A stretch of 64,000 nt of DNA, from contig NW_027271094.1 in the NCBI RefSeq assembly GCF_040938485.1, positions 248,001-312,000 of the forward strand. The letters are read 5' to 3'. This document shows, one piece after another, positions 55 to 59,300 of the stretch (within the stretch, counting starts at the first letter, position 1; every line of letters begins with the position of its first letter). Made by a program: the position numbers and the translations under genes. Origin of the DNA: Diadema antillarum. Taxonomy: Eukaryota. The notes beneath the pieces are model-generated. The model made no database searches, was not told where the DNA came from, and saw only the letters and a program-made list of their open reading frames with translations.

Positions 55-124
55 CTCTCTAGAGCGAGACAGAAATCTCGCCCCAGATATTGAAGTAATC
101 AACAAGCTTTTGACGGAAAACAAA
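55..124 (+). CDS. HAL: HAL-b penultimate exon
   Basis: AG at 53-54, GTAAGT at 125; SLERDRNLAPDIEVINKLLTENK. Confidence 0.88.
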
Positions 125-571
125 GTAAGTAATAATCACCTTTGATAAAAAACAAACAAACAAACAAACAAACAAACATTTCGCATCATTTTAAAACAAT
201 TACAAGGGACTGAATTGCCAAATGATAATTAAAACTGCATATCGCAACACAGCGTTATGACGATGTATAAAAGCGCGAGCTTATAGCCACACTTGTCCTG
301 CAAAGAACATCAGGGACAATATATTTGATTTTAACTGTGATCTTATTGTTATTCTCTGTTTTAACGTGTTTCTGGAGGCGAAAACGATTGATGAGATCTT
401 TTTAAAAGGTGTTAACTTTCCCTGTGACAGGTATGGGAAACTGTCATACCGTTCATCGAAAACTACGAATCGAAGATGTCCAAAGATATTGAGGTCCCCT
501 CTCCAACGTCCAACACTTTCAATACCACTGACTGCTCCTTCTCAACAATCGCCAGCATATCAACTGCTTGA
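55..571 (+). CDS. HAL: Histidine ammonia-lyase paralog (HAL-b), last two exons only (55..124, 431..571); gene begins before the window
   Basis: cag|c..aaa|gtaagt 70-nt exon gives SLERDRNLAPDIEVINKLLTENK; cag|gta..tga 141-nt exon gives VWETVIPFIENYESKMSKDIEVPSPTSNTFNTTDCSFSTIASISTA*. Same size and phase as the penultimate exon of the minus-strand HAL (40325..40394), 17/23 aa identical; 17 of first 27 aa identical in the last exon. Confidence 0.88.
431..571 (+). CDS. HAL: HAL-b terminal coding exon
   Basis: AG at 429-430; VWETVIPFIENYESKM..VPSPTS..; TGA 569-571. Confidence 0.85.
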   Translation, partial: VWETVIPFIENYESKMSKDIEVPSPTSNTFNTTDCSFSTIASISTA

Positions 572-4101: not shown

Positions 4102-7100
4102 GTACGTGGCAAATATGAACAGGCCTAGAGTCTACTTTATTCTAGTGAGGTACTTTGTACAAGTGAAATACATAGTTATCTGTAGACCAAAGAGGAGCAA
4201 ATTCTTCGATTTCCAGTTAAGTTTTTAACAGTCATGATTCCTACAATAGCAGTCATACAATCGCTTACACGCTTACGGCACTCATTCAGTCAAAAAGCCT
4301 GGAGGAATAAAAGTGATTACATGCCTGGCCATCCATGCAGCTAAATGTGTAGGCGTAGTCTTTAACTTTAACCCTCAGACTCTTTGCAAGTTGCACGATT
4401 GTAAACTGTATCTAGCTTTTGTTGTAGACTCTGCTCGTACAATACTGAGAGAGGCATTCTAATTTCTAGTTCTGTCTAGGCATTGTAAAATTCTACCCCA
4501 TGTAATGTTGCATTCAGAAGCAGCCTATCATATTGATGGGGAAACTTAAAGATAAAAAAAAAATGCGGATCATAACTGCATTCAGCCTCTAATATTAACC
4601 TCTGGATTGTTGAATATTGTCTCTATACTCAAGATGTGACTTTTTACTATGTAAGGTGGTGAACTGGTGGTAGTCCATGTTTGATTTCTCTTGTTTTTTG
4701 TTTTTTTTTTAAATGGCGTGAAAAAAGCTTATCAGATGCGTGTAAGCTACATGTAACCTCTGAGGCAGGAGTGTCATGCCCTGTGCACGAGACTTGGTAG
4801 GTCACTGCATGTAAAGTGGCAAAATTGTGTGGCAGGGCACTATAGGGCACCACTTAGACTTGCACAGTATTCCATATATTCAATAGCATATATGGCATGG
4901 GTTTAGTGAGTGCAGAAATTCAGTGAAACGAGTAGGCCCTATATAATGAGGAATATTGGCCAGTCCGTTTATTGTGCCACCCTCACTAGATGATATGTCA
5001 TAATATTGGACCTATAGTCCTATTCAGAAAAGACAGTTCAGGATATTCATATCATTTCATATCAAAATTTATATTCCTGAAGCTTGGTACTGAGATGTGG
5101 AAATCTTACATGTACAGTATCCAGTCTTCTGGGCGGGGGAGCTTTACTCAACTGCTCCGTTGACTTTGATCTGATATCCTGCAAAATTGATAATGTTTAC
5201 TGGTATAACATAATGTGTACATAATGGACTTAGTGCCATGGTTAGCTGCAGAGTACTAATATACATGTACATGAATTTGCGTGGTGTGATAGTTATTGCT
5301 TTTTGCAAATTTCAAAAGAAATATCATGCAAATGCCTTTGGAAATACAATGTACTGAATTACATATTATGTATGAATAACACGAAAATGCTGTCACTGGT
5401 GAAACTGTAAACAGTTAGGCCTACCTGCCCAGTACAGAATATCAATCAAAGCAAAGCTTTTCACCAATTTCAGTACATGGTACACATCTTCATTACTAAA
5501 TAAATTGTACGAGTAATGAAGTCATAGGAAACTTAGAAAAGATGCCATTATCTAACAACCTGCCTACTGTTACAAGTCAAGTGGTAACACACTCGCATAC
5601 AAGGTGAGGTGCACCAAAGATGTTTTCTTTCTGTAACTTGTTACGGCAGCTGGCTCTACAAAATGCCCTGCGCTACTTCCCATCCAGCCTTCATGAGGAG
5701 TTGGCACCAGAGTTTGCGGAAGAGCTTCGGAACTATGGTCACGTCTACATGTACAGGTTTAGACCCCAGATGGAGATGCGGTAAGTGCCCAAAGTTATAG
5801 AATATGTCAATGGCAATTCGTACACAACAAAAATTAAACACAGAATATGGAGCATGGTAGTAAATGGCAACAATCTCGAACCATTTTAGATTGTACTGGA
5901 AGCTGCAGTGACACTATATCAAGTACAGAAAAAGAAAACTAGCAGGAAAAAGAAAGATGTATTTTCATCTGATTTTATTATGGAAAGTGAAAAAAAGTGA
6001 AGCACAAAAATACTTTGAAACATAGTTTGCCTATTAAAAGAGTCCTGACCTTTTGTTATTGAGAGACTGAACTACATATATCAGCTCTTTTCAGCTCCCA
6101 TGGTTTAGGCTGTAAACATCTGATCAGGTGATTTGAAGTTGTACTACAAGATTGAGGTTGTGTGCAGATTGGCACAAATTCAGTCAGTATGTGCTACAAT
6201 ATTTATTGCTATCATTATTGATATTGTTGTTATCATTATTGTCATTGCAATCTGTATCATTTGTGTGTTTAAAAAAAAGACAAACCACTCTGCCTCACAA
6301 TTATTTCATTCTTCTCACTATTCTTATTATAATTATTTATATTTTCATTGTTATTATTAACAGGATAAAAGATAATGATGAAAATTGTAATAATTGTAAT
6401 AATTATAATCATAATCATAATGACATAATTGTAATAATGATGTTGAAATCCTTATCATCATCACTGTCATTTTCTTCATTATTATCATTATTGATATTAT
6501 GTTGTTGTAACCATACAGGCACAAACTTAACCATATATGCATCTAATATCACTTTCAATTTCCATCCTTCAGGGCCTATCCCATTGATGAATACCCAGCC
6601 AACTCCAGGCAGGCTGCAGCCATTATGCTCATGATCATGAACAATCTGGACCCTCGTGTGGCACAGGTTAATAATGTCTCTTCATAGTCATTCCCTTTCA
6701 GGCAGCCTTCCATTATTTTGGACACACTGCACTTACACTCAGCATTAGCGTTAACTTCATTGTTGTTTAAATCAAATCAATCTGTTCGTTGTATATTCAT
6801 GTACTACTGTATGTAGTGGCACTTTGTGAAAAAATTACACAGAGCCCTACATGTACATGTGCTGGAATTAAGTTAAGATATAAAGCAATATACACTGTAA
6901 AAACATTTGTTATCAGCATTTGATGGGTTGTGTTCACATATTTGTTTAGTAATATTGACACAGGCCACATTTTATGGTCTGTATGTGCATGAGAAAATAA
7001 TGCCTCATCTTATAATATATGTGAGTGTATTTATGTTTTGGCTCTATGTAAAAGAGGAGATCGTGGATATGTACACTGACTGACACTGAAGGATGAACGT

Positions 7101-9205
7101 GAATCCATACCTGCACATGAAACAAAGCAATGACATTGGTAGAATACTGAACTGGTGGCCAAGTAGGATCTTGAATACAGTCTCTTGTGCAATTGGTGTA
7201 CACACTGTATGTTCATGGATTTAAATCATGTTTGATGTAATCATGGTATTGTTCCCTGAAAAGGTGAAACAGAAAAGCGGTACGTGTACCTCCAATGCAT
7301 TTACCATGTACAGTTGTATACATTTACATTAATTTCTTCAAAAGGAAATACACTGAAAGTACATACTGTAGTTTGATGTGCTTGGGAAAACTGTGTTGTG
7401 TACCTGTATGTCATTTTCTAAACAGAGTTGTTAGTTATCATCATAATGGCAATTTTTTAAAAAATGCTTTCTAGTTTCCCCATGAGCTTGTCACCTATGG
7501 CGGAAATGGACAAGTCTTCTCTAACTGGGCCCAGGTGAGTGGTCGTAATGATGATATCATAGAACAGGCAAAATTAAGAAGACAACCCCCCCCCCCCCCC
7601 CAAAAAAAAAAAAAAAAAAAAAAAAGCTGGAATAAAAGTTGAGCTTCACAGGAATAGAATTTTGTGAGAGCAGTACATGTTCACATTTGAAACTTTGTCT
7701 CAAAATATGAAACTGGTAAAGGTGGTGCTTTAATCCTACATTTGGCCTGCTTTTTTTACTTTGTGCCTTGGTGACACTGAGCTAGATGGTTGCCTTCTCA
7801 ATAATATGAACACAAAAGTCATCTCACTAACAAAGTATATAGAATGTAAAGTCAAGGTGAAATATTGACATGTTTTCTTGATGAAAATAAATGTATTATA
7901 CATTTTAGAGAAGTATGCATGTTTGCATTTGAATTGTTATTGCTGTGCAAGTTGTAGAGAAGTTCTCTTGTCTGTGTGATGATCATACAATGTTCAGATG
8001 TCCTATTCATGGTGGCATACAGTACTTTATATTTTACCCCCATTCTGCAGAGTTTTTTTTTCCCTCATCATTTACTCATTGGAAGCAAAATTTGTTGCTC
8101 CTGACCACCAACTGAAGCGGATTGGATCGCAGTCTGATGAATCCAGCTTGTGTTGGTCGACTATCAGGGCAGTGTCAGACATGTCGTGCTCGACCCTCAT
8201 TGGATGGTCTTGCCTCATTGGATCACGCCCGACGTGTCTAACACTTCAGTTGGTGGCCCAAAGCAACAAACTTTGTTTCCAATGAATGACTGGTGAGAAA
8301 AACATTTCCGTGGAACGGGGTATTAGGAAAAACTTTCTTTGCAGTTTGATGCAACAGGTTTCTCTCCAGCACATACTACTGTAAAAGTGGATATTTTCGC
8401 GCGACTAATTTTTCGCGCTTGGCCCAGTAAGAAGAGTTTCACGTGTTTTTAATTCCGCGGAATCAAGACATCACGCACAGGAACATATGGCAAGCAAAAA
8501 TATTCGCGTGCTTTTATTTTTGCGCTAGTTTTTGGTTGCGCGAAATGCGCGAAAATTAAACACCGCGAAAATTTCCACTTTTACAGTATAAGAAAGTATG
8601 GCCTTTAAAGCCTATCTCTTTCTTTGATTGGAATAGTTCTGGCTTGTGATGTACTACCTGGCCCAGATGAGTGAGGAACAGACCTTGGTGATGTACTCTG
8701 GTCATCCATCTGGCCTCTTCCCCAGTCACAGGGAGGCTCCCCGTGTGGTCGTCACCAATGGCATGGTACCCAGTGACTTAATTAACCCTCTCTCTCCTCT
8801 TGTTTATAAACTTGTGTGACACTTTTCTCGTAACATCATACTGTTGCCCTCTTGCTCTGCCAAGTGTTTGATTTGGGTGGGCTGGTGTAGGTATTGTACA
8901 GACAGGCATCATGATGATTTTCTTGTATTGATTTCTGTAGGCAACTGCTGCTTTATTACTCTAGCCAATGTTGTAGAAAGGTTTTTAGCTTGTCTTTAAT
9001 CCTTACATTGTGTATGCAATAATTGGAAATATCTATTTCATATAGCATATTATGATTAGTCAATGACTTTAATTTCTTCTTTCTTTCTTTTCTCTATTTC
9101 TTCCTCTCTTTTATGCTGTATGAGAGATTGTTAATGCCCTGTGAGCACTCAGACTGAGTGGTTAAGGGCATTACAAATACTCTCTATTATTATTATCATT
9201 GTTAA

Positions 9206-9251
<46 letters not shown>

Positions 9252-12200
9252 GTCATCATTATTACCCTTTGTTCTGAAATACTTATGGTATAGGAAGAAT
9301 AAAAGTACTTTACATGTTATATTTTGTAAAATGCAATTGAGTTTGTAATTTGTGTGCCATTGGTATGTGATATTGATTATGTTTTAGGCTAGTGTAATAC
9401 TTAGCTAACTATTTTAGCCAAAATTGATTGATGATTGAAAGATACTGCAACAAACTAGTAATGATGTTGTTTTTTGTGTCTATGTTCACAGATGGTTCCA
9501 AACTACTCAACAAGAGAAAACTACAACCGTCTCTTTGCCATGGGGGTCTCCATGTTAGTAAATTAACTGTCGATTGTACTCAAGTTGATGTGAATGTTCT
9601 GATACTGATTAAAAGAGTTTAGCTACTATGATTATAAGAGAAGAAAGTGATTTGATTAAATATTAAAGTCTATCACGAAGTGATTAGGCTTTTTCTTTTC
9701 CTGGTACACGTCAGCTAAGATTTATTGAATCATTCATCTTGCTGAACCACAAGGTACTGATAGATGTATACATGATGAAATTTAAGTGAGACAATTAATT
9801 GACCGCAAGCATTTCAGTTTTACTAACCCAGGTACATATTGGCTTCACAAACAATAGGCAAGAAATTCAATGGAATATAATATTCTGATTTCGAAGGTTA
9901 TAACTTATCATCTCCTTAATGTTATGGAGATTGTCATAATTCTATTGATTTGTGTAACTGCTGTTATTTTGAACAACTTTTAGATTTATATTTTTCTGGA
10001 AATCTCAGTCATTTGTCAATTGTATTGACAATATTATGCTTCTCTGCATTACTTTTGCTCTACTGTGTGAAGGTATGGGCAGATGACAGCAGGAAGCTAT
10101 TGTTATATTGGACCCCAGGGGATCGTTCATGGGACAACGGTAAGATATGTAGCCAGCATCCTGCTACAGACAGGAAGTGCTGTGATGTCCATCTTTTTGG
10201 CCTTCAGTGCAGTGGTACTCATGTCTTGATTCAATGTATGAAGATTTTCTGTAATAGCTTCAACCTTTATAACCTACCTTTACAGGAACTTGAATTAGTT
10301 CAATTACAGCAATGTTTTATGATGCCATTTTAAAGTAATGAAAGGATATAAGTGGTTTTGTGCTCTTATTATGTAGTCTGCAGATAGGTATTTGATGCAC
10401 AAATGCTAAAAACCTATACTGAAGTGTTCAGATCATCCCTTGCTGGATTGCATTCACTATGTACAAATATAGTATAGTGGGTAAATTATTGCTCTGAAGT
10501 ACAATATTGTATTTCAAACTCTTCAAGATTTGTTTTCAATGTTGCCAGTGTGAAATAATGTTAATCAATGCACTATTGAAGAAACTGGGCTAGTGCTGAC
10601 CTTTTACTTCCTTTTGCAGCTGACAGTCCTCAACGCGGGGCGTAACCACCTTGGCACCAGCGACCTGAGGGGGCGTGTCTTTTTGACCTCAGGCCTTGGG
10701 GGCATGAGTGGTGCCCAGGCCAAGGCAGCGGCGATCTGTGGGTGTGTGGGTGTGGTGGCTGAGGTCAGCAAGGAGGCACTGATGAAGAGACACAAGCAGG
10801 GGTGAGGATTCCATTGACCCTTGACCCTTGACTCTTGACCCTTCCAGCCCTCTTCTTCTTCCCTCTTCCCTATTCCCTCTGTACATTCCTCCTCTTGCAA
10901 CTGATGCTGCACACAGCAGGTCTCCAGTTTCCCTTTTCTCTTCCTTTTTTCTTGTCCTTTTTGTTGCAAAATCTTGTCTTTCAGGAGAAACTTCAGTTTG
11001 GGTTTTAAAAAAAAAAAGTGTAAATATTAGTTTCCTCTCTTTTAAATGCAAAGAAACTTTAGTAGTGACCTTCAGATGGCTGAACACCTTCACGCTTTCC
11101 TACCATTATCTTGTGGATGTGATACAAGTGATGCACATTTATACACCAAAGATGCAATTTTAGGAAGAATCTTGGTTAATCCACTGCATGTATGTTGACT
11201 ATTACCTCCAAGTGTTATGACACCTCTCAATCTTCTAAGGCAGTTGAGATCTCCTGGGATATGCCATTATAGCTCAACTTGTAGGATCTAGACTCTCGAG
11301 CATGAGCTCCCTGGTTCAAGTCCCCTTGCTGTAGCAGTCGTGCCATTAGGCAGGGCACTTTATCCTCATTGCTTAGTTCTTCAAAGAGAACTTTAGAGCT
11401 GTTGGTCCAGAGGTAATTTTGCTCGTAGACATTGCAGCGCTTCCATAATGGCCGTGAAAAATAAACCCAAATTAAATTTGTACCAATGCCTTATTCTTCA
11501 AAACCCAAGTTTTCTTATATTTCTGTCTATTCAAAGTAGAACAGGATTTTGGTACTTTTGAAATACTTTTCCCTTGTGCTGGTTAAACAATCTTTGCTCC
11601 TTCTCAAACAAAACGTGATAATATTCATTATGTCATTTGTTGATGTGAATTGTCCTCTATTATCCACACAGATGGGTCATGGAGGTCATAGATGATGTAG
11701 ATGCACTCATACAAAGAATCAGGTAAGACAGTCATATATTTCTGCTATGCTTTACTCATTTACCTTGGTATGAGTGCTTTAAACTCACTGCATCATCTAC
11801 ACTGTCGGATTTTATTAAGACTGATGTGATGCCTGAGGATAATATAAATTATTTTACCCTCCTGATTCCTTTTCTTGTCATTGTATTCGGCAGACAAGCA
11901 AGACAGGCAAGAGAAGCTGTCAGCATTGGTTACCATGGCAACGTGGTGACTGTATGGTGAGTCCGTTTTCTAGTTGATATATAGCATTATTGAATATGAT
12001 CATGTTTATGATTAGTCTGCTCTATTCAGAGATGTCTGTGACTTTTCCTATCTATCTGATAACCATGAGGATTATGATTTACGTGCATGTCTTAAATGCG
12101 TACTGTATTTGGTGTGACTGTTGATATTTCTTTTACAGACATAAGATACGAGTGACATTCCGGGTCTAGATTGGTGTATGAAACAAGTATGTGAATGAAG

Positions 12201-15200
12201 TACAGTCAAACCTGTCTATAGCCACCCAAGGGAGACGAAAAAAAAATGGCCGTTATAGACAGGTGGCCGCTATAATTGGGTTATCCAAGTACATATAGCC
12301 TAATCATGTACATGCACATTGTACATGCATGTGTGTATGTATGCACTCGTGTGTTTCATGCATTGAACAATGCATGGTGATTATGAAATTGTTGCACAGT
12401 AGCATGTGTATAATTCTGAAGAAAGCTTAACACTAGTGCATTGCTATGACTGAATGAGTGATGACTGAAGCGGTGGTGATCACTGAACGTTGCCCAGGAA
12501 TAAGTGGCAGGACTACAAAGCAGCAAAACACGCTGAATTATCTACTCGGCTACGGCTCCATCGGTTCTTTGGCCGCTATAGGCAGGTTGAAAGCTCCCAC
12601 GGGAAACAAAAGTTGTGGCCGCTGGCCGCGTTAGACAGGTGGCCGCTATACACAGGGTCTTAAACAGGGCTTTTCTCTCGGGGGGATTTTTCAGTGGCCG
12701 TTATAGACAGGTGGCCGCTAAGGCAGGTTCGATTGTATGTCTAAACTTTCTCCACATCCTTGGCGTCTTCCTCCAGGGAACAGCTTGTGTCTGTGTATGA
12801 GGCCACTGGAGAGCTACTGGTAGATCTGGGCTCAGACCAGACCTCCTGCCACAACCCATTCAACGGAGGCTACTACCCAGTCCAGCTGACCTTTGACCAG
12901 GCCAATGACATGATGGTCACTGACCCTGTGCGTTTCAAGAACCTGGTGCAGGAGAGGTGTGGATTTCTACTTGCTAGTCAACCCATATTGAAAGTTGTTT
13001 AGTCAAGACATTTTGCTTCTTTTTTTTTTTCTTCTTCTTTTTTTTTGAGGGGAGGGGGGATATATTTAGGATTTGTGTATATTGGTCTCTGTATGTGTTC
13101 CTCGAACTAATATGGGACATAGAATTTTCATTTTCATATGCACCAGGCAGTGAATAGCATGTGAATGTTTTTAGTGTATAATGCAAAGAAAGTTGATTTG
13201 GTCTGAGAGTAATGTGGTGTATGTGCATGCTGGTTAGTACTGATGGTCTAAATTTAAAGCATAGGTATGGTAGAATACACCATGTCTGAGTCTAGCTGTT
13301 TTGTCAGTATTGTGATATTGCCGGAAAAGTCTGTCCATGTATATACAGATAATTGTTGGATCTGTAGTCAACCTTGCTTTAGTCGACCTCGCGTAAGTAA
13401 AATAATTGCCTAAGTATAAGGTCTTTTAAAGTCCTCTTCTCTTTATATTCTTTTACTTGTACTCTCTCATTACTCAAATTTTCTCGAAGTTGAAGCATTT
13501 CTTCAGTCCAAATAGATTCAAATAGATTCATCTTAGGCAAGGTTGGCTGTAGTGTCATCTATATGTGATTGCCCTCTACTGTGTGTTCATCTGTCTTTCT
13601 CTCCGTCTGCTCTAGCTTGCGGAGGCAGATTGCAGCAATCGACAGACTGTCGTCACTGGGCATTTACTTCTTTGACTACGGCAACGCCTTCCTTCTGGAG
13701 GCTAGCCGAGCAGGTCAGTGTTAAGAAACTTTACCTCCAAGATTGCAGGAAAACAAAATGTTCTCCAGGCCTCGAATTATCCGACGGCCACCGACGGCCA
13801 TGGCAGTCGGTGCCCCTTTCGTTGGCCGCAATGCCTTTTTTAAATGTGCCCTTTTTCTTGTGGCCGTGCCGTGGTGCCCTTTTAGAATGAAAGTTATTAT
13901 TTATGATGTATAATATGCCCTTTCTCAAAGTCTACACTTAAATAAGCTTGAACAACTTTCCTGATCTCAAATATCATACCTTCAGTTCACTCGCGTCCCA
14001 ATATATCTGATTCAAACTCAAAGTATCTTTCCGAGATACGAGACGACGTGTACGTACATGTACGCCCGACCGGCTTTTACCGTCCCGACTGCCTCCGCAG
14101 CGCAGCGGCCATAGAGTTACTAGCTAGGCAGCGGCGGGCTGGAGCAAGTGGTCGCAAGCCATGCTAAAAAATGCCAGGCCTGTCGGACGGCTGCGAGCAT
14201 TGCCATCTCTCTCGCTCTGCATTCAAAGCAAAATGGCGCCGCAAGTGCTCCAAAGCGAGCCCGGCGTATGCGTTGAGAACGTACTGTATTACAGAACCTA
14301 CATTGTATTGCGAATGGCCTACTGCCTAACGTCGTCTGCTGCGGAGAGATCTTATGCGTGCGTGCGCTGCTAGAGTGTAGCAGCACGGTCAATAGCATAC
14401 AGCTCTATGGGGCATTCACATCACATATAAACACCCAACATGCCCTTTCCAATGTGGCCTTGGTGCCCCTCTGACTGACCTAAGTGCCCTTTAATGGCTG
14501 GCCTCTTGGAAAAAGTGCCCTTTTCTAAATGGCCTTGCCCCTCCAAAATCCTATTTCAAGGCCTGCTCTCATTCTCATGTTCATTTCTAGTAATTCTTTC
14601 AAGACAAGATTTTCACTTTCTGCATAACAGATGTTATATGTATCTGGCTCAAGATAAAAATGTAATTGCTATAATTTGCAACAGGAAGAGTCTTATTTTC
14701 TTCTTCTTCCTCTTTTTTTACTCAAGGCAAAAGCCACTGAGATGATGAAACACCTAAGTGGAATAAGTAAGGTTGCTTTTCTCTTTGATTCTGTGTGTAC
14801 CATCTGTGCTGATGATACATTATAGTAACAATAAAAGATACAAGAAGCTAGATATAAGATGTGTGTACCCATTTTCCGTCTTTCTAGGAGCCAACATCCA
14901 AGCAGAGACGGACGGGGCCAGTGCAGGAAACCGTTTCAAGTATCCATCCTACGTCCAGGATATCATGGGGTAAGTTGAAGGGAATTGGGCCAACAGGGCA
15001 GTGTTTCATGAAGCTTGTTAGTCACTGACAACTGTTTAATGCTACTGAAATCCTCACATCTGATTGGCTGAGGGGAAATTCCTAATTCACTGGCAAAACA
15101 CTTGATGAAATGCCCCCTGGATGCATATCACATGTCATATCATATCAATGTTGATAGCAATGCAATGTCTAGGTCATACATTGTATCTAGACACCGCATT

Positions 15201-18200
15201 GTGTGGTAGACTGGAACCATTTGGTTTCCAGCATTGTCGCCAACAAGTTGGGGTACGTTGTGTTTACTTACTTTACTTGGAGTTTACTTGGATTTGCCCC
15301 TCCAGGTTTCGCTATCCCTCTGATATGGGCTGTACTTTAGGGGATGGCTGTTCCAGTGTTTCTCAAGGATAGTTTTAAATTGATTGACACTTGTTGCTCT
15401 GACAGCTGCGTCTGCCAAGGAGTTCCAGTTGTTACAACTGCGAACAGAGAAGGTCTTGTGGTGCAGCATATGTTTGGATCTGGGTTTTCTGACTTTCATG
15501 CAGTGGCCTCTGGTTCTTGAGCTATCTACCGATTTGAAAAATTTGTGTACACAAGGTGGTCAATCCCGTTCATGATCTTATATATTTGTAGAACCTCTGC
15601 TCTTTGTCTCCTGTATGCAAGAGTCTCCAAACCCAGGGCTTTCAGTCTGTCTGGATATTCCAGGTGGCAAAGATGTGGAAGTTGACATGTGGCTCTTTGC
15701 TGCACTTTCTCTAACAAATCCTCATCTTTTTTTAGCATAGGACACCATACCGAGTTGCGATATTCTTGTGTGGGTCTGACGATAAGACTTGTAGAGCTTA
15801 AGCCATCCTCTTTCATTCAGGCTAGAAAAAGGATCTATTCAGAATGCCAAGCTTGGTATTGGCTCTTTTGGTTATCTCAGCTACAACCCGTACTTGCTCA
15901 GAGAACAAAAGTGCAGAGTCAAAGGTCACTCCAAGGTCTTTCTCATGTTCAGCCACAGGGATCTTTCTTTGGCTACTAGTTGTTGTTATTGTGTAGTCGT
16001 TCTTCTGGTTCTGTTTCCCGTAGTTAACAACCTTGCATTTTGTGATGTTGAATTGCAACTTCCATTTGTCGGCCCAGGCTGAGACAGCATGAATGTCCTT
16101 TTTACAAATGTTCTGCTTCGCTTTGATTTTCAACAACATGGTATAACTTGGTATCATCGGCAAACAATTTAATTTCAGATGTCACCTCTTCCGGCAGATC
16201 GTTAATGAAGCAGAGAAAGAGCACTGGTCCCAACACGCTGCCCTGAGGGATCCCACTGGATACTGAATGTGGAGATGACAGTTTACCATTCACAATGACT
16301 CTCTGTGACTTTCCCGTCAAGTAGGCCTCTATCCAGTGGAGAACATGACCAGTTATTCCATTGGCTTGTATCTTGCAAAGCAGGCATTTGTTGGACACAG
16401 TTTCAAATGCTTTCCTGTAGTCTAAATAGATACAGTAAATACAGTGACTGTTATTTATCTCTGCAGTCCACTCTTCTAGCACCTCGAGAAGTTTGGCCGG
16501 GCTAGAGCTGCAGCGGACATGGTTGGTGATGTCATCAAGAGTTGAGACAGCTGTCCTACTGTACTTCTTGAACAGGCTGAAGCCAAGGTTGGGTGAGAAC
16601 TTTGTGTGGCCAGCCAAGAGGAAGTTGAGAGTGATGGTGTGATGAAGTCCTTTCATGGTATGCCAACACAAGTACCATAGCAAGAACTTGTTCTTATTCT
16701 GACCTGCACAGTTATCACAGTGCAGGTCAAGGTGATGTTCTCTGAGGCCGTACTTCCAAAAGAAGAAATGCAGGTAAGAAATGACCGAGATCGATCCCTT
16801 GGACAGACACATCGCCTTGTCAATCAGGAAGTTCACCTAAGAACAAAAAATATAACAAAATATAAAGATAGCAAAAGCATGAGTATTACAATCTTTGCAC
16901 TGAGAGGTTATTACGGTAATTTTGAGCTATGATAATCTTAACATCTCACCTGGCCAACACCTTTGCAGCTTCCTCCAAACACACCACACCACTTCCGGGG
17001 GGTCAGAAAGTACATCGGGCCAGGCTGTAAAGGGTTGGATGGAAAGTGAACCTGCTGTATGTGCATAATCAATCGGGGGGGGGGGGATATCAGGTCACGT
17101 TTCCTTGATGCGGGGTCGTCGTTGCTGCGGTTCGCCTCCACCATCCATTGTAGCACCTCTCGTTGCTGTTTTGCAGAGTTGAGGTGATTCAGGTGCTCCC
17201 TGGCCCGGGCCTCTTTTTCCTCCTCTGTCAGGTTGGCCCTTTGCATTTGGTACACTGCCAGGTTGTTTTTATGGCACTGCCAGCATACAGTCGCTCATGG
17301 GCGGCAGATGATGATGGGGGGGGGGGGGGGGGGGGGGGTGAACTGTTTCCACATCTTTAGGAACTCTTTTCCCTGGAGAGAAAGTTGTTAATAAAAAAAG
17401 ACAAACACACAAAGTTCAATGAATATTTTAGATAGTCTTATACATGTAGTGTGACTTATGGTTCGGACTAGCGTTTTAATTTTATAAACACTCTTCCAGT
17501 ATACTTCACAATACATGCATATCTTGACACTTTCATGTTTTGTCCTGATTTTTAAGAAACCAGTTTTTGTTGATACATATAAGATTGCTTAAAAGATAGA
17601 TCATAAAAAAAATAAAATCTTAAAAACACAGGTGCATTAAGAATGTAATAGTTTTTGATTCATTCTACTTTTATCATTCATATTCAGCTTTACAATGTTT
17701 CAGTCTCATTGAATTCAAATTGTATCCAAATTTTGAAATAAAAAATGACATAAAGCCCATCATTACAACAAGCAGCAAAATTGTGTGATGAACATACCTC
17801 GTTTCTCCATGATGCCAGTGTACACCCCCCACACCTTGGCCTGGGATAAGGATGAAGGCAGCAGTTTAACATCCAGACTTTTGTAACCTGGAATTCGTCC
17901 TGGCAGGAACACTGCATTTTCCTCTGTGAAGTTGATCAAGAACCTGACGACAGCCTATACGTTTTCTGCCGAGTAGCTCCTTGTGTTGAATCACTTCCCT
18001 CCTGCCTTGTGGGTCACAGAGCATACTCCGTGTTGGCGAAGCCATTTCTTTGGCCTTGTCAACTTATCCTTGGAAATGCTAATAGTAAAGAGAGATAGAG
18101 AGAGACAGACATTCACACATAAATTAATATGATAATTAAACTTCATATTTTCACAGTATTAATGTGCTATGTTAAGTAACTTGTAAACACACTGCTAAAA

Positions 18201-21200
18201 AAAAAAAAAAATCAAAAATTCATACATTTTGCATTTTCCAATCAACATTACAGCAAACGTCTCAACCAAAAGTATTCAGTGTTATGAGCCACTTTAGTGC
18301 ATCAACTCTGGTCTGCTTTGATCTGACAGAACAGTATGTCAGTAAAATTTACTGAGCTTATTTTTAGAAATCCTATAGGGCCCAAGTACAGCTGTACATT
18401 GTGGAGAGTGGCATGCACCAACCAAAAATAATAATTATAAAAGAAAATCATAATAATAGCACTTAAACACATGCCTCTTGCACAGCAACATAATGTGCTG
18501 AGTTACACATTATGTAATTAGGTCAGTACGTTTAGACATTGCATTGCATGAAATAAAAATTTGAAATCAACATTACAGCAATCTTTAATCCTAAGAAATC
18601 TGATCACATGAATTCTGAACTGCTGAACTGTAGTGCTCTTAGAGCAACAACAAATGGTGTCACGTGAGTGACTTTTTTTTCTATCTCTGCTACTCTGACA
18701 CCGAAAGAATGGAAATTCAAACTGTTTGCATGCTGTTATATTCGAGTTTAATCTTTGTAGCTTTCTCGTTCACAGCATATAACAATACATTGAGCATAAA
18801 AAGATAGTCGGAAACAAATTACAAATACATAACTGGGTTATCTTGGATGACTTGAACTGGTGATCCCCTCAGCTTGGCTCAGTCGTCATCGATGCCCAAT
18901 ACCCTCGTCGTCGACCTCGGCACAGTCGCTTGGCTTGTCTCTTGGAAGCACCCCTTGACTTGGCCACTCAGCTAGACGCTACCCTATCGGCGGTTCTCTC
19001 AGCTCCTCGGCCTTCACTAGTCCCTGCTACCACGCAGACTCCTGCCTTGACCCGAGCTCAAGCGACGGCGAGCAGGCAAATGGAGATTGAGCTCCGTACC
19101 AAAGTTCGGATAATAATTGTCAAAGTTCAGTTTATATCAGCAGCTGGAGCTCGCATCTCACCGACGTGGAAAACCCCCAGAAGAACGACTGCTGCCTAAG
19201 TGGAGATCTATGCTGGATGTCTGATTAAAGTGTTTCTCCCCGATCCTCTACATTCATCAGCTTTTTATTAGCTTCCCTAGCCATAGACATTTACACTAAA
19301 GTCCCTTACCCTCCCATACACTTGCTTTTTCATGCCTTTCCTACACTAAAGAAGTCATCCAATCAGCATGCTTAAATATAGCCCTATTGAAACTCTACAC
19401 AATACGTCTAGCCATCGTCTAGACTGCTGTTACATAACATCTCTACTCATGAACTTATGGACAATAAACTACAACCAGCACCCTAGTGACACTGACCTAG
19501 CTGAGTCTTGACTGAGCTAGATAGCATTCCTCGCCACCACCTGGATGGGAGCTATTACATAACACCTCTATTGACTCAATTTCTATAGTCCGAGTAAATA
19601 CACAATACTGCAAACCAGGCATGCTGTTGCCATGCTATTTCTTTAACTTTCGCTTTGTCTCATTTCATGCGAATGCCGTGTCTGAATTTAACTGATCTAG
19701 ACATGCTGTTGCTATGCCAGTTTATTCTTTAACTTTTACTTTGTCTCATTTAATATGAATTTCCAGACAGTCAGTTTCTTGCAGTTTGACCTAGTGGCTT
19801 TCTAGGACAGCTTTAAAGCTCTAAATCTTTGCAAATTCAAACAAATTCGATTTTACTTCACTGGCCAAAAATCAAAGATAAATTTCTCTCCTGACAAATA
19901 GCAAGGCTGTGATACAGTGCATACGATTTAGGCCTACCAGGTTCTAATGCATATTGTGGTCTATTATTTGATTGTATCTTTTTGCTCTAGATCTAACATA
20001 CAATGTACGTACAAATTCAAAAATCGGAACATGTCGGTGCAAATCCTCTGCCCATTGTAGGTGTAAGATGATCTGTCATGCTGGCGATCCTTTTGCTCCT
20101 TGCGCTTTGAACAGTTCGTTTTTTCCCCCAATGTTGTCACCATCTTCAGTTGTGCAAGTATGACTATGTCCTCTATCCGGGGAAAGTTCGAATATGGAGT
20201 ACCTGTACTCCATAACATCCTGCTAGTCCAGGTGGTCCATCATGCAGTTGTGCTTTCGGTTGCATCTGAACTCCCTCACAGTGCTCCGCTCCTTCTCCAG
20301 ATCCTCACTGTCATACTCCTTATGAATGTCTCTCTCAATTTTCTCGCTCATGTTCTCCAGCTGTTTGAACTCGTCCTCCTCATCCTCCTTATCCTCATCA
20401 TCAACACTCTCCATATCTACATCTTCATCTTCTCAGTCGTGAAAATCTGCTTCGATTTTGTCTACCTCGTCCGTCTTCTCCCACTACACGTAGCAGTTCG
20501 GGCTATGTTGATCCGGCAGCCACGGTTAATACGAGAACTCGTCCCGACCGGCATTTTGTTTTTATACCCTCTGTTAACAGTGCACGGTCGGTGATTGGTA
20601 AATACGAGCGAAAGATGAACAACATTACTACAACAGTAGGAAGGCAAAATATGACGCAAAAAGAAGAACGAACAGACTGAAGAGATGTATGTTGAAATTT
20701 GTCGTTGATTTCACACCTGCGAACACAGGGAGAGAAAGCCCAGGTAGAACGCCAAATTAAAAAATGCTGCGATCCCATGAGATCCAAACGTAAACAAACA
20801 AGCGCGAGCCAGTTCACATTGACAAAGCATTCCTTTTCAAATATCAGTCCGTGGTTGATATTACGGGACACGAACAATATTTCCCATGTTGCCTATGCCA
20901 TGCTTTATCCCTTTATGTGTTCAGGCACATAATAGCTTCCCTTGCCAAGCTTTTAAATCTGCATTTAATCACACTAAACTTGACCTAGTCCTAAGACAGC
21001 AAGCCTACTCAGAGGTAGCACTGTAACACAGTCCAACAAGAAGGCCACGGTGACACAATAAGGATTTGGGAAATAAAGTTATATCTACTCTTTGAAAATT
21101 AGTTTCCAGACACCTGAGCCAATGTGCAAAGGAAGAACTTCAGCTTGTGTGCCAAGCAGTGAAGAAAGCACATAGTAAAGATTAAAGATTTGCCAGCCAT

Positions 21201-24200
21201 AGCGAGGCAGGGTTTCATCACAGGAGCCTAGGTACATGTATCTTCCATCATTATTGTTCCTTTCTGTACTTTCTTTTTTTTTTCCAGGGACATTTTCTCT
21301 CTTGGCTTTGGTCCGTTCCGCTGGGTGTGTGCCTCCGGAGACCCAAATGACCTCTCCATGACAGACGAGATTGCTACCAATGTCCTTGAGGATTTCATCA
21401 ATGCGGGAGGTGATGATATGTTCTCCTCTGTGATAGTGATAGCAATGACAATGATATGGGATTTTATGTGTTTATTGTATTTTTCTGCCACACACAAGTT
21501 GAAACAGTGTGAACATACTCTGCATTCAAATATAGCCATACACGTAAAAGTGGGACCGAAGCTCAATGCGCACAAGATTTAGTGCAACTTTGAGGGTGGT
21601 TATAGGTTGACAACTTTGGAGTGTCATTATTTTCCAGCTCCCTCATCTTGGCTACTAGTATATTATCTAGAACCCAGCATTTCTAAGCAGTTCTAGTAAA
21701 TCATCTTCCTTTTCACTTTCTTTCACCCGCATTGTGTGGAATTAACTTTAGAACTGACACATGATGGTGCAGTCGGGCTTTTCTGTATGTTACACAATGA
21801 AAGGTTCCTAGTGTGCGCATAAATGGTGTCAGATTTTTCCATTTCTTAAAACGTGAACTATGTGTTTACGACACTTCTTGCTGTTAGATGACATTTCTGG
21901 CTTTGGTTTTGCAATGTTTCAGTGCCGGAGTCAACAGAACTGCAGTATGAAGACAACATTCGCTGGATCAAGGAGGCAGGAAACCACAAATTGGTAGGTC
22001 ACTTCCGTATTGGAGTCACTTCACAGTTTGAGCATTGTGAAGAGTTTTCCATTTGAAGTCAAAAGGGGCCTGAGCTTTCGATCCTAGCAGAATCTTTGTC
22101 AGAAGCAAACTGACAAACAGGCAGAGAAAGCAATCACAAATAATGTATGAGGACTACACACAACAAGAACAGTCATGGGAGGGCTGGGGACACAGAACAA
22201 AGAAAACGTAAAGGAAGGGTTGGAGGTAGTGGCCAAGGAGCCCAACAGGTAAAGGGAAAGGGGTTTTACATTTCTCAAATTTATAAATGCCACAATGGGC
22301 CAAACAACTGCCGACACTAGTGTGATTTGTAGATCTCAAACTTGTTCAGATGTAGGCTTGCTGTCAACCAGCTCTCAAGGGGTTAAACCTGGTGTCAAAA
22401 CATGTAGCTCAAGAGTTCTGTTAACACATTAAGAATATACATTCTTGGTGGAGGTTGGAACATGTGACAGCATTGCTCAGTAGGCATAAGTGGCACACTG
22501 ATGACCAAAGTTTAGAGATTCTCAATGTAGCATTGGAATGTCTGTCATGATGAAGGAAGCTAGCGACACGTGTTAAACTCACACATTTTTGCGATACATT
22601 AATTTTCGCGCATTTCACGCTACTTTTGGCTAGCGCAAATTTTAAAACCCGCGAAAACATCTTCACAATTTTCTCTGCCAATTTTGAATGAGTTGACAAT
22701 TGTGCTGTGCGAATTCAAGAACCCGCAAATATGTTTTTGAGCCGCTCAACACGAAAAATTAATCACGCAAAAATATTGACGTTTACAGTAGCCTCTAGTC
22801 CAGAGGTACATAAAGAGGACCAATCTAATGCTGATTTTAAAATGCAAAATATATAAAACTTGATGATTTGAACGTCTCTATGTCTTAGAAATGCATGGCT
22901 TATTGGCATTGCCCAGTGGGATGTGTGAGGATGTGTGAGGTGACTCTTCACTTTGCTGATATTGCACTCAAAACTTTAAACACCTCTGTTTTGCAAGGTG
23001 GTCGGCTCTCAGGCCCGCATACTGTACTCTGACCAGAGAGGACGTATTGCTATCGCACTGGCATTCAATGAAGCTGTGCGTGAGGGCAAGCTGCGCGGAC
23101 CGGTCATCATCAGCCGTGACCACCATGACGTGAGTGGGACGGACAGTCCGTACCGCGAGACGTCCAACATTTACGACGGATCGGCATTTTGTGCAGGTGA
23201 GTTTACTGTCAGGGTGTTGTGTGGGACAACAATGATCATAGAAATCACACAAGAGCCCACTACAGGAGTGAGGGGAATTCATGCCTCTATTTTAATTGTA
23301 TTACATGGCTTGTTTTATTTCTTGGTTGTTTTTTGGGGTTTTTTTTTTGCTTGCTTTGTGTGTATTCTGTGTGATTGTATGGCAAATTTTTCAGTAGGTC
23401 ATGGTATGATATATCCTTGCTATCTTTCTTTCTTTGCTCATATCATCTGATTTTTTTTTTCTGTAAAATGTGTGACAGATGACACAAGGCATGGCATTAC
23501 GCATTGTTGCTATTAAGCAGTAATGCTTTGCAGTATAATCGTCAAGGACTTGTTAATTGTAGGAAAAAAATCATCAGTATTATTCATGCAGAGAATGCTC
23601 CTCACTAGTGGGATATTCTAATTCACTTGAAATGTAAAGATACGTAATTATGTGTATTCAATATTTAGTTTATAAACTTGTGCTCCCCACTCCGTACCCC
23701 TCCATCTTCCACATCTAATCCTGATGTCATCATTCTTTTCCGTGTCCCCTCCCCCAGACATGGCCATCCAGAATGTGATCGGGGACTCCTTCCGGGGAGC
23801 CACCTGGGTCGCGATTCACAACGGGGGCGGGGTCGGATGGGGCGAGGTCATCAATGGGGGCTTTGGTATGGTGCTGGACGGCACCAACGAGGCTGACCAG
23901 AGGGCTAAGAAAATGCTGGCCTGGGACGTGTCCAATGGGGTGAGTCTAGCAAGTTTGTGAGTGGCTCGAAGATCAGTCCATTTCTTGGTGCAACTTTTCA
24001 TCTATATAGATCTCACTATACTGTTTGAGAGGTGTCAGTAGCTACAAGACAGTGTATCTGCAAAGTGTCACTCACCCATGTTGTAATTAGATAATGTGAA
24101 TAAATAGCATTAGTAGTATGATGTTTTGCACTCGCAGAAAACGTGTGGTATTATCCAGTCGAGATTTTTAGCGACAAAGTGGATACAACAACTCTGTGTA

Positions 24201-56300: not shown

Positions 56301-59300
56301 GCAGGTTTCCAACATTTGCGTATGTGTGTGTGTTTGTGAGATAATGAGAAACCTCTTAAGATATATAAAAGAGCATATTTATTCTTAGAGGAATTCACAG
56401 TTTATTTGATGAAAATTGGTCTTCAAATAGCTGACATATTTAGAAAAGCAATCTTAATGAAATACTGCAGGGCACGACTTTTATTAGGATCTCTTTGTTT
56501 TACTTTGTTTTTGGATGTTTCAGTCATTTCAAAACCAATTTTCATCAAATAAACTTTCAATTCCCCTAGAGTTACTTATGCTCTTTAACATTTCAAAGAG
56601 TGGTTTCAAGTATCTTGCAAAAGGGTAAAAGCTGAATCCTCATCTCAACCATTTCTATACTTTAAGAGAAATTTTGTATTTACCGAATTTCATCTGTTTT
56701 TGTTTCACTATTTTCTCTTGTTTTTTGTTCTAAAACAATTTTTTTTTTGCATGAGCATTGAAGACAAAAATTGGTGCTAGAAAGTAAATGATCAATCACT
56801 TCTTGCATTTATGTGTGAAAACACACACACAAACACACACACACACACACAGCATGTTGCTGTCCACATACAACTTTTAATGTTGCAGTGTTACTGAGCA
56901 TTGGGTAATGTAGAGTTTCCACAGACAGTGAGTCCACAAAAGGCCCAACAGACACAGGTGCCTGCAAACAAGTGCAAGGCCGCACAGTTTGACAATGAAA
57001 CTGCATTATCAGCAAATCACACACTGAACTGCACCATAGAGCAGAGTACGCTTGGACCTCACATAAGGAGGGGGTGCTCAAAACATAACACACACACACA
57101 AAAAAAAAAAAATGATAGTGAAATAATTCTGCACAGGCATGGCCTCGGTGGCCCAAGTCAAGTGCATATATTTGCTTTTTCACTTCACGAATGCTTTGGT
57201 GCAAACCAGTTTAGACCAGTTCTCCATGAGGTTTTGTCACAGGAAGCATTTTATTTATGGAAACTTCTTTTTTCACAATCATTTCCTTACTCTAAGGCTA
57301 CATCCTGCTACAAATGATCCTCTTAATCATTTCAGCTTTATGCAAAAAAAAAAGTCTATAACACTAATCTCCCCATTACTCTTCTTCTAGCATAAGTTTT
57401 ACATGACTGAAATAAAAAGCAATATTTTACAACTTGTATGTTCATTCTGGTCTTAATTTCATATCATCACTGCATATTTCTCAAGCACAACAGAAGTTTT
57501 ATCTCTAACATTGGTATGAAAAGTAGGGCCTATACACTGTATCTCTAATATGGATGGAATACATTAAAAAACAGTGAAATTATCTACAACAAAACTCCCA
57601 TCACATGTCCTATTAAAACATAATATGACACTGATTTTTGTACAGCTTCAATATGTTTTATGTGAGAATCTAGCATCTGATATAAGTTAAGGTGATTCAT
57701 TACCTCAAGAATCAGATCTACTCGGGTCCACCAACCCAAAATATATGTACTACAGACTGTACATATCAAAGCACACTGTCAATGGGACTGATAGTTTTTA
57801 AACCTTGACAAACTACAATGTAATTTCCATCTTACATAATAGCTGCTTTTAAGCTTTCAAGCTTCAGTTCACTGATAGTGACCTTGAGTCAAACGAGAAA
57901 CAAACACACGCCCACTTGGACTATTCACTAAATTCATGACTCGTGCAGTCACGCAGTATAACAAACAAATGTTTTCATAAAGAATTCCTACCTGCACTGT
58001 TATCCTAAAAACTGGTAATTTTTAATATGCATACATCATCTGAATTTTGTAAGTCCAAAAAAATATATCTTTCTTTCAGCTTGAACATGTGATAGACTGG
58101 CTTCAAAATGCTTTTCTTAGTTTCATTAAAAGAGTCTAAATGTTTGCGAGACTTACCGTAATTTCTCTGGAGCAATCACCACCCTGGCAAATTTGCCAAA
58201 TCCTGTGTTTATTCCATAGACAACTGAAATGGAAAATAACATGTATTGTATGGCAAACTTAAGAAAGCAATCAAGTACAAAGTGGATATTTTGCAAGTAT
58301 TTTATTGCAATTGTTGAATGATAGAGACTTGTGTATCTATTTGTGGAGAGTGTTGGTGAATAACTGTGTGTGTGTGTGTTGTGATGATGCCGACCTATTG
58401 GTGTGTCTATGCGTAACAATGTGTTAACAAATGAACATTTACACACAGTGACGCTAGAAATACAATTGTGTGGCATTATGTAAAAGCAGGTATAAACTGT
58501 CCATCTCCAGTTATCCAGTCATGTTGGGACTAGTGGTGTTACTAGATAACAAAGCGAGGTATAAATCCAAGCATGATACTTTCAAGTAGATTGGGGTATA
58601 CACAAGTCAACAACGATTTACTATTACTACAATGATTTACATGATATTTGAATTTTCCTATTACTTGTTAATATGAAATCAATAATTGGTAAAAAATACC
58701 CCTTTTCATGTGGATGGATCTCTTTTGAGTTTGCTGCCAAGGAATAATCAAATCTTTGAGGTGCACGTGTACCCCCTTCTCTCTCCAATCCACTTTCTCA
58801 AACCATCGGACAAGCCGCATAGGCCCTACTCTTCTTTCTACAACAATTTGGTTAGAATAGATATCATGATGATCTGTATTTATACCCCCCCCCCTTTTCA
58901 CTGCCTAGTATCTGCAATAGAATTGCTGTTTTGTAATTGGTTTTGGTTAAATTTCTCGCTGAAAAGAAACTGCATGTGGAAGATGAAGACAATCGTATGC
59001 CAGCCCACATCCAGAAAATAACTGAAGTTGGACTGCAGTTATATCCACCACAATTTGTGGTTGCAAATGCATATCTGATTTGGAAGTACAGTCAGCCTTG
59101 CTTAAGTCGAACTCACATAACTTGAAGGTCTTTTTAAGTTCTCTTCTCTTTATATTCTATCGATTTTAATCCCTCGTAAGTTGAATTTTCTCTTAGACGA
59201 AACTATTTCTTAAGTCCAAATAGATTTGACTTTATGCAAGGTTGACTGTACATACCAATCTATCAGGTAAATGAGTATGAAGATTGGATTTACCTTTATT

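Follow-up and report, generated by a model that had tools for sequence, protein, structure and literature searches.

The window analysed here is a stretch of 64,000 nt of DNA from the sea urchin Diadema antillarum corresponding to positions 248001-312000 of one contig, C206, in the searched assembly (1.75 Gb, 2963 contigs). Two histidine ammonia-lyase (HAL) genes, designated HAL-A and HAL-B, and a urocanase gene located between them were recognised at this locus. Histidine ammonia-lyase (histidase, EC 4.3.1.3) is an MIO-cofactor enzyme that converts L-histidine to urocanate, and urocanase is the second enzyme of histidine catabolism. HAL-A reaches the window only with its 3′ end, and the features concerned are as follows.

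Window 55-124 (C206:248055-248124), + strand: HAL-A exon 17, the penultimate coding exon, 70 nt, tblastn match to HAL-B.
Window 125-430, + strand: last intron of HAL-A, 306 nt, GT..AG.
Window 431-571 (C206:248431-248571), + strand: HAL-A exon 18, the last coding exon, 46 codons and then the stop codon TGA at 569-571.
Window 8631-23948, + strand: exons of a urocanase (UROC1-type) gene, with Urocanase_N, Urocanase, and Urocanase_C matches in order.
Window 37298-60694, - strand: exons 2-18 of HAL-B, 18 exons in all, with the exon structure shared by the two copies.
Window 37447-37298, - strand: HAL-B exon 18, 150 nt.
Window 40394-40325, - strand: HAL-B exon 17, 70 nt.
C206:318481-318254, - strand: HAL-B exon 1, just past the right edge of the window.

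Exon 17 of HAL-A consists of one leading base, 23 codons, and no trailing base, and encodes (G)SLERDRNLAPDIEVINKLLTENK. It lies between the acceptor ttcctcag/ before position 55 and the donor /gtaagt from position 125 (+ strand, ttcctcag/CTCTCTAGAG...AACAAAG/gtaagt; slashes mark exon boundaries). The following intron contains an (AAAC)7 microsatellite at 150-178, and the AG acceptor of exon 18 ends at 430 (+ strand, ...ctgtgacag/GTATGGGAAACT...). The translation of exon 18 starts VWETVIPFIENYESKMSKDIEVPSPTS...; its first 27 residues are homologous to HAL-B, and beyond them the C-terminal tails of the two copies are unrelated (HAL-A, ...NTFNTTDCSFSTIASISTA). When the open frames of the minus strand of the window were compared with exons 17 and 18 of HAL-A using tblastn, E values of 2e-9 and 5e-9, respectively, were obtained. 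Profile searches with exons 17 and 18 alone gave no family match, both exons lying beyond the Pfam domain; their identity therefore follows from homology to HAL-B and continuity with the upstream exons described below.

The initial annotation had placed a second HAL paralog at the left edge of the window, and window 55-124 and 431-571 indeed form the tail of HAL-A, whose upstream exons were found. The identity counts on which that proposal was based, 17/23 and 17/27 residues against the minus-strand HAL exons at 40394-40325 and 37447-37298, were reproduced. The 70-nt exons agreed in size and phase, both copies having a single leading base and none trailing, and the contrast in intron size (306 bp versus ~2.9 kb) was measured as 306 versus 2877 nt. 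The 2877-nt last intron of HAL-B showed no alignable similarity to its 306-nt counterpart in HAL-A. The statement that most of the common residues of the 70-nt exon are written with different codons is correct by a small margin (9/17 = 53%, barely a majority), and, although the gene was described as absent from the ORF track, both pieces occur in a mechanical list as short ORFs (11-145 and 476-571), which are easily overlooked.

To the left of the window, HAL-A was modelled by comparing the flanks frame by frame with HAL-B and by accepting splice sites that are common to both copies and consistent in phase. The gene spans C206:228379-248571 on the + strand and has 18 recognisable coding exons, 16 of which lie left of the window (C206:228379-247011).

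C206:228379-228597, + strand: HAL-A exon 1, 219 nt.
C206:230946-231020, + strand: HAL-A exon 2, 75 nt.
C206:231698-231770, + strand: HAL-A exon 3, 73 nt.
C206:234328-234394, + strand: HAL-A exon 4, 67 nt.
C206:235230-235393, + strand: HAL-A exon 5, 164 nt.
C206:239353-239492, + strand: HAL-A exon 6, 140 nt.
C206:240391-240438, + strand: HAL-A exon 7, 48 nt.
C206:240999-241050, + strand: HAL-A exon 8, 52 nt.
C206:241475-241570, + strand: HAL-A exon 9, 96 nt.
C206:242422-242576, + strand: HAL-A exon 10, 155 nt.
C206:243357-243437, + strand: HAL-A exon 11, 81 nt.
C206:244193-244258, + strand: HAL-A exon 12, 66 nt.
C206:245012-245090, + strand: HAL-A exon 13, 79 nt.
C206:245488-245574, + strand: HAL-A exon 14, 87 nt.
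C206:246324-246458, + strand: HAL-A exon 15, 135 nt.
C206:246903-247011, + strand: HAL-A exon 16, 109 nt.

The paralog proposed in the initial annotation depended on the presence of such upstream exons; counterparts of all 18 HAL-B exons were found on the + strand, in order and undisrupted. The HAL-A frame is intact, encoding 618 aa (1857 nt without a stop or frameshift), and no stretch of N was met in the analysed sequence. Seventeen of the HAL-A junctions are canonical and in frame; the one between exons 1 and 2 is in frame only via a weak donor or a candidate additional exon (see below). HAL-B as a whole occupies C206:318481-285298 on the - strand, with 18 exons and an intact frame of 621 aa. 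In both genes all introns are GT-AG and the intron phases are identical, and 17 of the 18 exons are equal in length, whereas the last exon measures 150 nt in HAL-B and 141 nt in HAL-A. In contrast, the introns are unrelated between the copies and mostly shorter in HAL-A, so that the gene spans 20.2 kb in HAL-A and 33.2 kb in HAL-B. The two genes are convergent, tail to tail, with their stop codons 36.7 kb apart.

Searches were run exon by exon, and the joined coding sequences were used only for dN/dS, the rate test, and the tree. A six-frame search of the whole assembly with the Pfam model Lyase_aromatic gave exon-sized matches only on C206, on contig C518 (two sets on each), and on the 11.7-kb contig C2556. 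The sets on C206 were a + strand set at 235-246 kb and a - strand set at 290-303 kb. Exon-wise PF00221 matches of HAL-A covered profile positions 64-118, 120-155, 231-279, and 387-432, and eight HAL-A exons matched NCBIfam TIGR01225 (hutH) collinearly over positions 72-469 of 506. Whenever a HAL-A exon gave a match, TIGR01225 was the top family, above the Tyr_2_3_mutase, TAL, and PAL models, and the best PDB matches of HAL-A exons were histidine ammonia-lyases. Exon 6, whose protein sequence is identical in HAL-A and HAL-B, aligns to residues 134-162 of Pseudomonas putida HAL and carries the MIO-forming Ala-Ser-Gly triad (ASG at 142-144). The YGINTG loop and the RSH, VQDxYxxRC, and QEDHVS motifs of HAL-A align with the solved HAL 6V6H. 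The catalytic and substrate-binding residues of these motifs in P. putida HAL are the Tyr of YGINTG, the Ser-His pair, the Gln, Tyr, and Arg of VQDxYxxR, and the Glu of QEDHVS. Counterparts of Asn195 and Phe329 were located in LINGTQ and GNFHGE in our own alignment. The N-terminal domain Par3_HAL_N_term (PF12053), which is also present in many vertebrate HALs, was detected in exon 1 of HAL-A (23.6 bits) and HAL-B (30.8 bits; cut-off 21). The two copies have the same domain set (Par3_HAL_N_term and Lyase_aromatic) and the same catalytic motifs. HAL-A differs at two otherwise invariant sites near catalytic residues (TGFG to TGIG and VQDAY to VQDSY). On this reading, HAL-A would be transcribed and spliced correctly and would have enzymatic activity.

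The hifiasm assembly of D. antillarum is uncollapsed: it comprises 1.75 Gb on 2964 contigs with both haplotypes explicitly retained, 84.4% duplicated BUSCOs, 2.52% heterozygosity, and a haploid k-mer estimate of ~703 Mb (PMC13511894; bioRxiv 10.64898/2026.05.24.727502). In an assembly known to keep both haplotypes, with 84.4% duplicated BUSCOs (PMC13511894), the left-edge exons might be an artefact in which the other haplotype of a single HAL was misjoined in inverted orientation, and the contig C2556, which repeats part of HAL-A at ~99%, could be taken in the same sense. However, C518 is collinear with C206, is 92-98.6% identical to it with introns included, and carries both genes in the same arrangement.

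C518:310812-330046, + strand: HAL-A, intact.
C518:421427-368952, - strand: HAL-B, intact.

Collinearity that extends through the introns, in an uncollapsed assembly keeping both haplotypes, identifies C518 as the other haplotype. Coding differences between alleles amounted to 0.6-1.3% compared with 16.8% between HAL-A and HAL-B, dS was 0.015-0.05 between alleles compared with ~0.65 between the copies, and the introns of the copies are unalignable and of different sizes. A misjoined haplotype is thus extremely improbable, and there are two HAL genes per haploid genome. The claim of an old inverted duplication under purifying selection, rather than a haplotig artefact, is borne out by the convergent pair on both C206 and C518 and by a dN/dS of 0.12.

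The contig C2556 (11,663 bp) holds at 6113-11663 a third, partial copy comprising HAL-A exons 6-10 with their introns. This copy was 99.1% identical to C518 and 98.8% identical to C206 and thus matches neither exactly, and the first 6.1 kb of the contig match neither haplotype at that place. C2556 probably represents either an assembly scrap or a structurally variant intron 5.

HAL-A and HAL-B were 86.5% identical in amino acid and 83.2% identical in nucleotide sequence. Over 599 aligned codons, dN was 0.079-0.083 and dS was 0.63-0.73, depending on the method and the haplotype pair, giving a dN/dS of 0.11-0.12; the value on which the initial annotation had made the retention of the paralog turn is 0.12, not ~1. 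The 50-nt intron flanks of the two copies were 20-50% identical, which is the random level. Since the paralog dS is ~13-40 times the allelic dS, the duplication is old relative to allelic divergence. Selection was also visible among the alleles, for which ~77% replacement changes are expected under neutrality: the HAL-A alleles showed 11 differences, 4 non-synonymous and 7 synonymous (P = 0.005), and the HAL-B alleles showed 23, 1 non-synonymous and 22 synonymous (P < 1e-12). Both copies are still constrained on the time scale of present polymorphism.

Silent divergence was uneven along the genes. In exons 15-16 (C206:246324-247011; window 41009-41948), 9 silent changes were found in 77 conserved codons, compared with an average of 32% (P = 4e-5), and in exon 15 only 4 of 135 nt differ between HAL-A and HAL-B. 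Silent divergence was also low in the 5′ half of exon 1 (the first ~45 codons). Recent gene conversion was rejected as the cause in exons 15-16 because the flanking introns are random; the low values may reflect old, exon-limited gene conversion or constraint at the nucleotide level.

The two copies have evolved at different rates. With ten vertebrate HALs as outgroups, 26-32 unique replacements were counted in HAL-A and 8-14 in HAL-B (P = 0.0002-0.02), and where the residue was the same in at least 8 of the 10 outgroups, 27 changes fell on HAL-A and 7 on HAL-B (P = 0.0008). In the maximum-likelihood (ML) tree, HAL-A and HAL-B grouped together with 100/99 support, with branch lengths of 0.29 and 0.044, respectively. 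The protein clock of HAL-A thus ran ~3-6 times as fast as that of HAL-B. Branch omega was estimated at ~0.18 for HAL-A and ~0.07 for HAL-B on the assumption that dS is split equally between the branches, by calculation and not from a fitted model. HAL-A is a relaxed or re-specialising copy, yet it is not evolving like a pseudogene.

Such asymmetry raises the question of whether HAL-A, although intact, is no longer a plain histidase: it could have been neofunctionalised toward another imidazole or aromatic amino acid, or could make urocanate where urocanase is off. The imbalance of 27 versus 7 changes at conserved sites and the unequal branches would fit such a changed role, as would two replacements next to catalytic residues (F by I in the TGFG segment of the Tyr loop, A by S in VQDAY), the complete replacement of the C-terminal tail, and the fact that the family includes enzymes with shifted substrates (ergothionase was among the PDB matches). 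On the other hand, hutH is still the best-scoring family for all tested exons, every catalytic motif checked is there, and most of the HAL-A-specific replacements are conservative. We consider a changed role quite unlikely and favour a HAL-A that retains histidase function.

The junction between exons 1 and 2 required separate consideration. The join that keeps the frame uses a poor donor, TTT/GTTCAC in HAL-A and TTT/GTCCAT in HAL-B, and an excellent phase-1 donor lies 10 nt downstream of it (ATTG/GTAAGA in HAL-A, ATTG/GTGAGT in HAL-B). The three codons between the two donors (VHI) differ between HAL-A and HAL-B only at third positions, and VH(I/V) is kept (...DFVHVG) in P0001 and P0188, the fragments with the N-terminal exon closest to HAL-A exon 1. 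The sole acceptor of exon 2 is phase 0. Because a phase-1 donor of exon 1 faces a phase-0 acceptor of exon 2, a small exon 1b with a length of 2 modulo 3 is expected between them. Judging from these splice signals, the existence of exon 1b appears more likely than the join via the poor donor, and the exon would correspond to the linker of ~26-33 aa in other animal HALs. In intron 1, one collinear segment that is not of low complexity was alignable between HAL-A and HAL-B (31/39 nt, E = 0.006), and in both genes it falls within an AG..GT interval that is open and of the right phase. The hypothetical exons defined by it are as follows.

Window 60901-60968 (C206:308968-308901), - strand: candidate exon 1b of HAL-B, 68 nt, phase 1 to 0, VADELGPDDGLKNVFGTNLYITI, with acceptor ttccag/ and donor /gtgtgt; hypothetical.
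C206:230841-230911, + strand: candidate exon 1b of HAL-A, 71 nt, the only homologous candidate; hypothetical.

Pairing of all open AG..GT candidates between both introns 1 yielded no convincing exon 1b. A segment of HAL-A resembling the vertebrate linker (C206:228909, VVLVGYLMQPEFKPSSS) was rejected because it runs into a stop and has no donor that could be used; it is a chance likeness or a relic.

The distance from candidate exon 1b to exon 2 is 206 nt in HAL-B and 34 nt in HAL-A in both haplotypes. As an intron, 34 nt would fall below the normal minimum, and the 5′ splicing of HAL-A may therefore have been impaired recently. Three readings of the HAL-A junction remain, namely that the weak in-frame donor is used, that candidate exon 1b is unreal, or that the gene carries a recent 5′ splicing defect. 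Under the last of these, HAL-A would have been functional for a long time and then disabled at its 5′ end when the intron shrank to 34 nt, and it would now be a pseudogene too young to have accumulated stops or frameshifts. The strong exon 1 donor, unfit in phase for the acceptor of exon 2, the conserved intron-1 segment so close to exon 2 in both haplotypes of HAL-A, and the faster protein clock of HAL-A are in line with such a history. Against it stand the 1857 nt free of stops and frameshifts, the bias of HAL-A allelic changes against replacement (4 versus 7, P = 0.005), and a branch omega of ~0.18 (equal dS assumed), which allows only a short neutral phase; moreover, exon 1b is itself hypothetical, and the in-frame join via the weak donor is present in both copies. 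The selection data imply that any 5′ defect of HAL-A would be very recent. We regard 5′ disablement as unlikely, and prefer to read HAL-A as a functional gene.

Compared with vertebrate HALs (such as those of Latimeria, Rhinatrema, and Equus), identity over nearly the full length was 62.5-63.7% for HAL-A and 64.5-66.5% for HAL-B. The vertebrate and urchin proteins have a common start (MxxxxxxRGEW) and the N-terminal Par3/HAL domain. Vertebrate HALs are ~650-660 aa long and have a linker of ~26-30 aa after the N-terminal domain, which the 18-exon urchin models do not have; this is the site of the putative exon 1b. The view that vertebrates generally have one HAL is roughly true, except that Xenopus laevis has a 'gene 1' and a 'gene 2' and Rhinophrynus has a HAL and a 'HAL-like' gene on one chromosome. 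Like the urchin pair, these amphibian duplicates (P0072/P0182 and P0070/P0180) are two HALs in one lineage, one slow and one fast, with branch lengths in the ML tree of 0.065 versus 0.21 and 0.035 versus 0.16. They arose separately, inside the vertebrate clade of the ML tree. Bacterial hutH (TIGR01225; P. putida 1B8F and 1GKM) shares the catalytic core and the MIO-forming Ala-Ser-Gly with the urchin genes.

No full-length urchin HAL was obtained from the protein searches. An exhaustive search with exon 1 yielded N-terminal fragments for the most part, together with two full-length proteins of vertebrate type, and a word search with exon 1 returned one genomic fragment only, P0188. A word search with the caecilian HAL P0039 found vertebrates only, and one with the 124-aa open frame around exon 5 found nothing above 82% identity and no urchin. 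In a tree of exon 1 (76 aa), the branching order of HAL-A, HAL-B, and P0001 was not separated.

The urocanase locus between the two copies is the sole one in the genome and is present once per haplotype contig, and the gene order is HAL-A > urocanase > < HAL-B within ~90 kb. A gene for the third pathway enzyme, a hutI/AMDHD1-type imidazolonepropionase, lies outside the window, ~1.25 Mb from the HAL pair on both contigs; therefore, C206 and C518 are collinear over more than 1 Mb. FTCD-type genes (FTCD_N matches) were found on other contigs.

C518:341827-356665: urocanase gene on the other haplotype.
C206:1553509-1557037, - strand: exons of the hutI/AMDHD1-type imidazolonepropionase gene, outside the window.
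C518:1665907-1678788: exons of the hutI/AMDHD1-type gene on the other haplotype.

Bacterial hutH commonly adjoins hutU (urocanase), and HAL and urocanase are adjacent in the urchin too. Unlike the bacterial hut operon, however, the urchin genes are rich in introns, carry the animal N-terminal domain, and are transcribed separately and convergently, with no operon. A search of open-access text found no paper on HAL paralogs in echinoderms or on HAL-urocanase linkage in animals.

Several other elements were noted around these genes. An open frame at window 16105-16836 (- strand) with matches to RVT_1 (E = 3e-15) and DUF7869 represents part of a retroelement within the region of the urocanase gene. 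A 160-aa open frame at window 6152-6634 (+ strand), located downstream of the HAL-A stop and before the first recognised urocanase exon, gave a LITAF-like zinc ribbon match below the cut-off (E = 0.003). Short interspersed repeats of one family, ~330-390 bp long and 79-90% similar to one another, are present upstream of HAL-A and in introns of both HALs; they gave spurious protein-level matches in the first comparison of HAL-A with HAL-B.

C206:223025-223409: repeat copy upstream of HAL-A.
C206:239600-239930: repeat copy in HAL-A intron 6.
Window 46388-46729 and 56388-56639: repeat copies in HAL-B introns.

Taken together, the sequence evidence indicates, with a probability of roughly 0.8, that window 55-571 is the 3′ end of HAL-A, a complete second histidine ammonia-lyase gene under purifying selection. 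HAL-A and HAL-B would have arisen by an inverted duplication, after which ~65% substitution would have accumulated at silent sites and the introns would have become unalignable, and purifying selection would have kept both copies since. HAL-B would be the slow copy, more like the ancestor, and HAL-A the faster copy, more relaxed or partly re-specialised. HAL-A is a lineage-specific, inverted, and long-retained duplicate of a well-known enzyme gene, and the event was an ordinary duplication.

A bolder reading treats HAL-A > urocanase > < HAL-B as an animal histidine-breakdown cluster with divided roles, in which the slow copy feeds urocanase and the fast copy is specialised. Mammalian epidermis makes urocanate without urocanase, and the specialisation of the fast copy would be, for example, the production of UV-absorbing or signalling urocanate in tissue free of urocanase, or a shifted substrate. 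We consider this division of roles rather improbable and retain the reading of an ordinary, long-kept duplicate.

With this finding, the count of histidase genes at the locus is corrected from one to two per haploid genome. The case also illustrates how, in an assembly that contains most genes in duplicate, genuine paralogs can be separated from retained haplotypes. The pair offers a clean natural experiment on how a duplicated metabolic enzyme evolves asymmetrically, and frogs provide an independent parallel. Given the urocanase gene between the copies, it can be asked whether proximity allows successive steps of histidine catabolism to be co-regulated in an animal. Current understanding is not overturned; the result is of use for annotation and gives evolutionary biochemistry a modest lead, the weight of which would grow if the copies differ in role or if the three-gene arrangement is conserved and functional.
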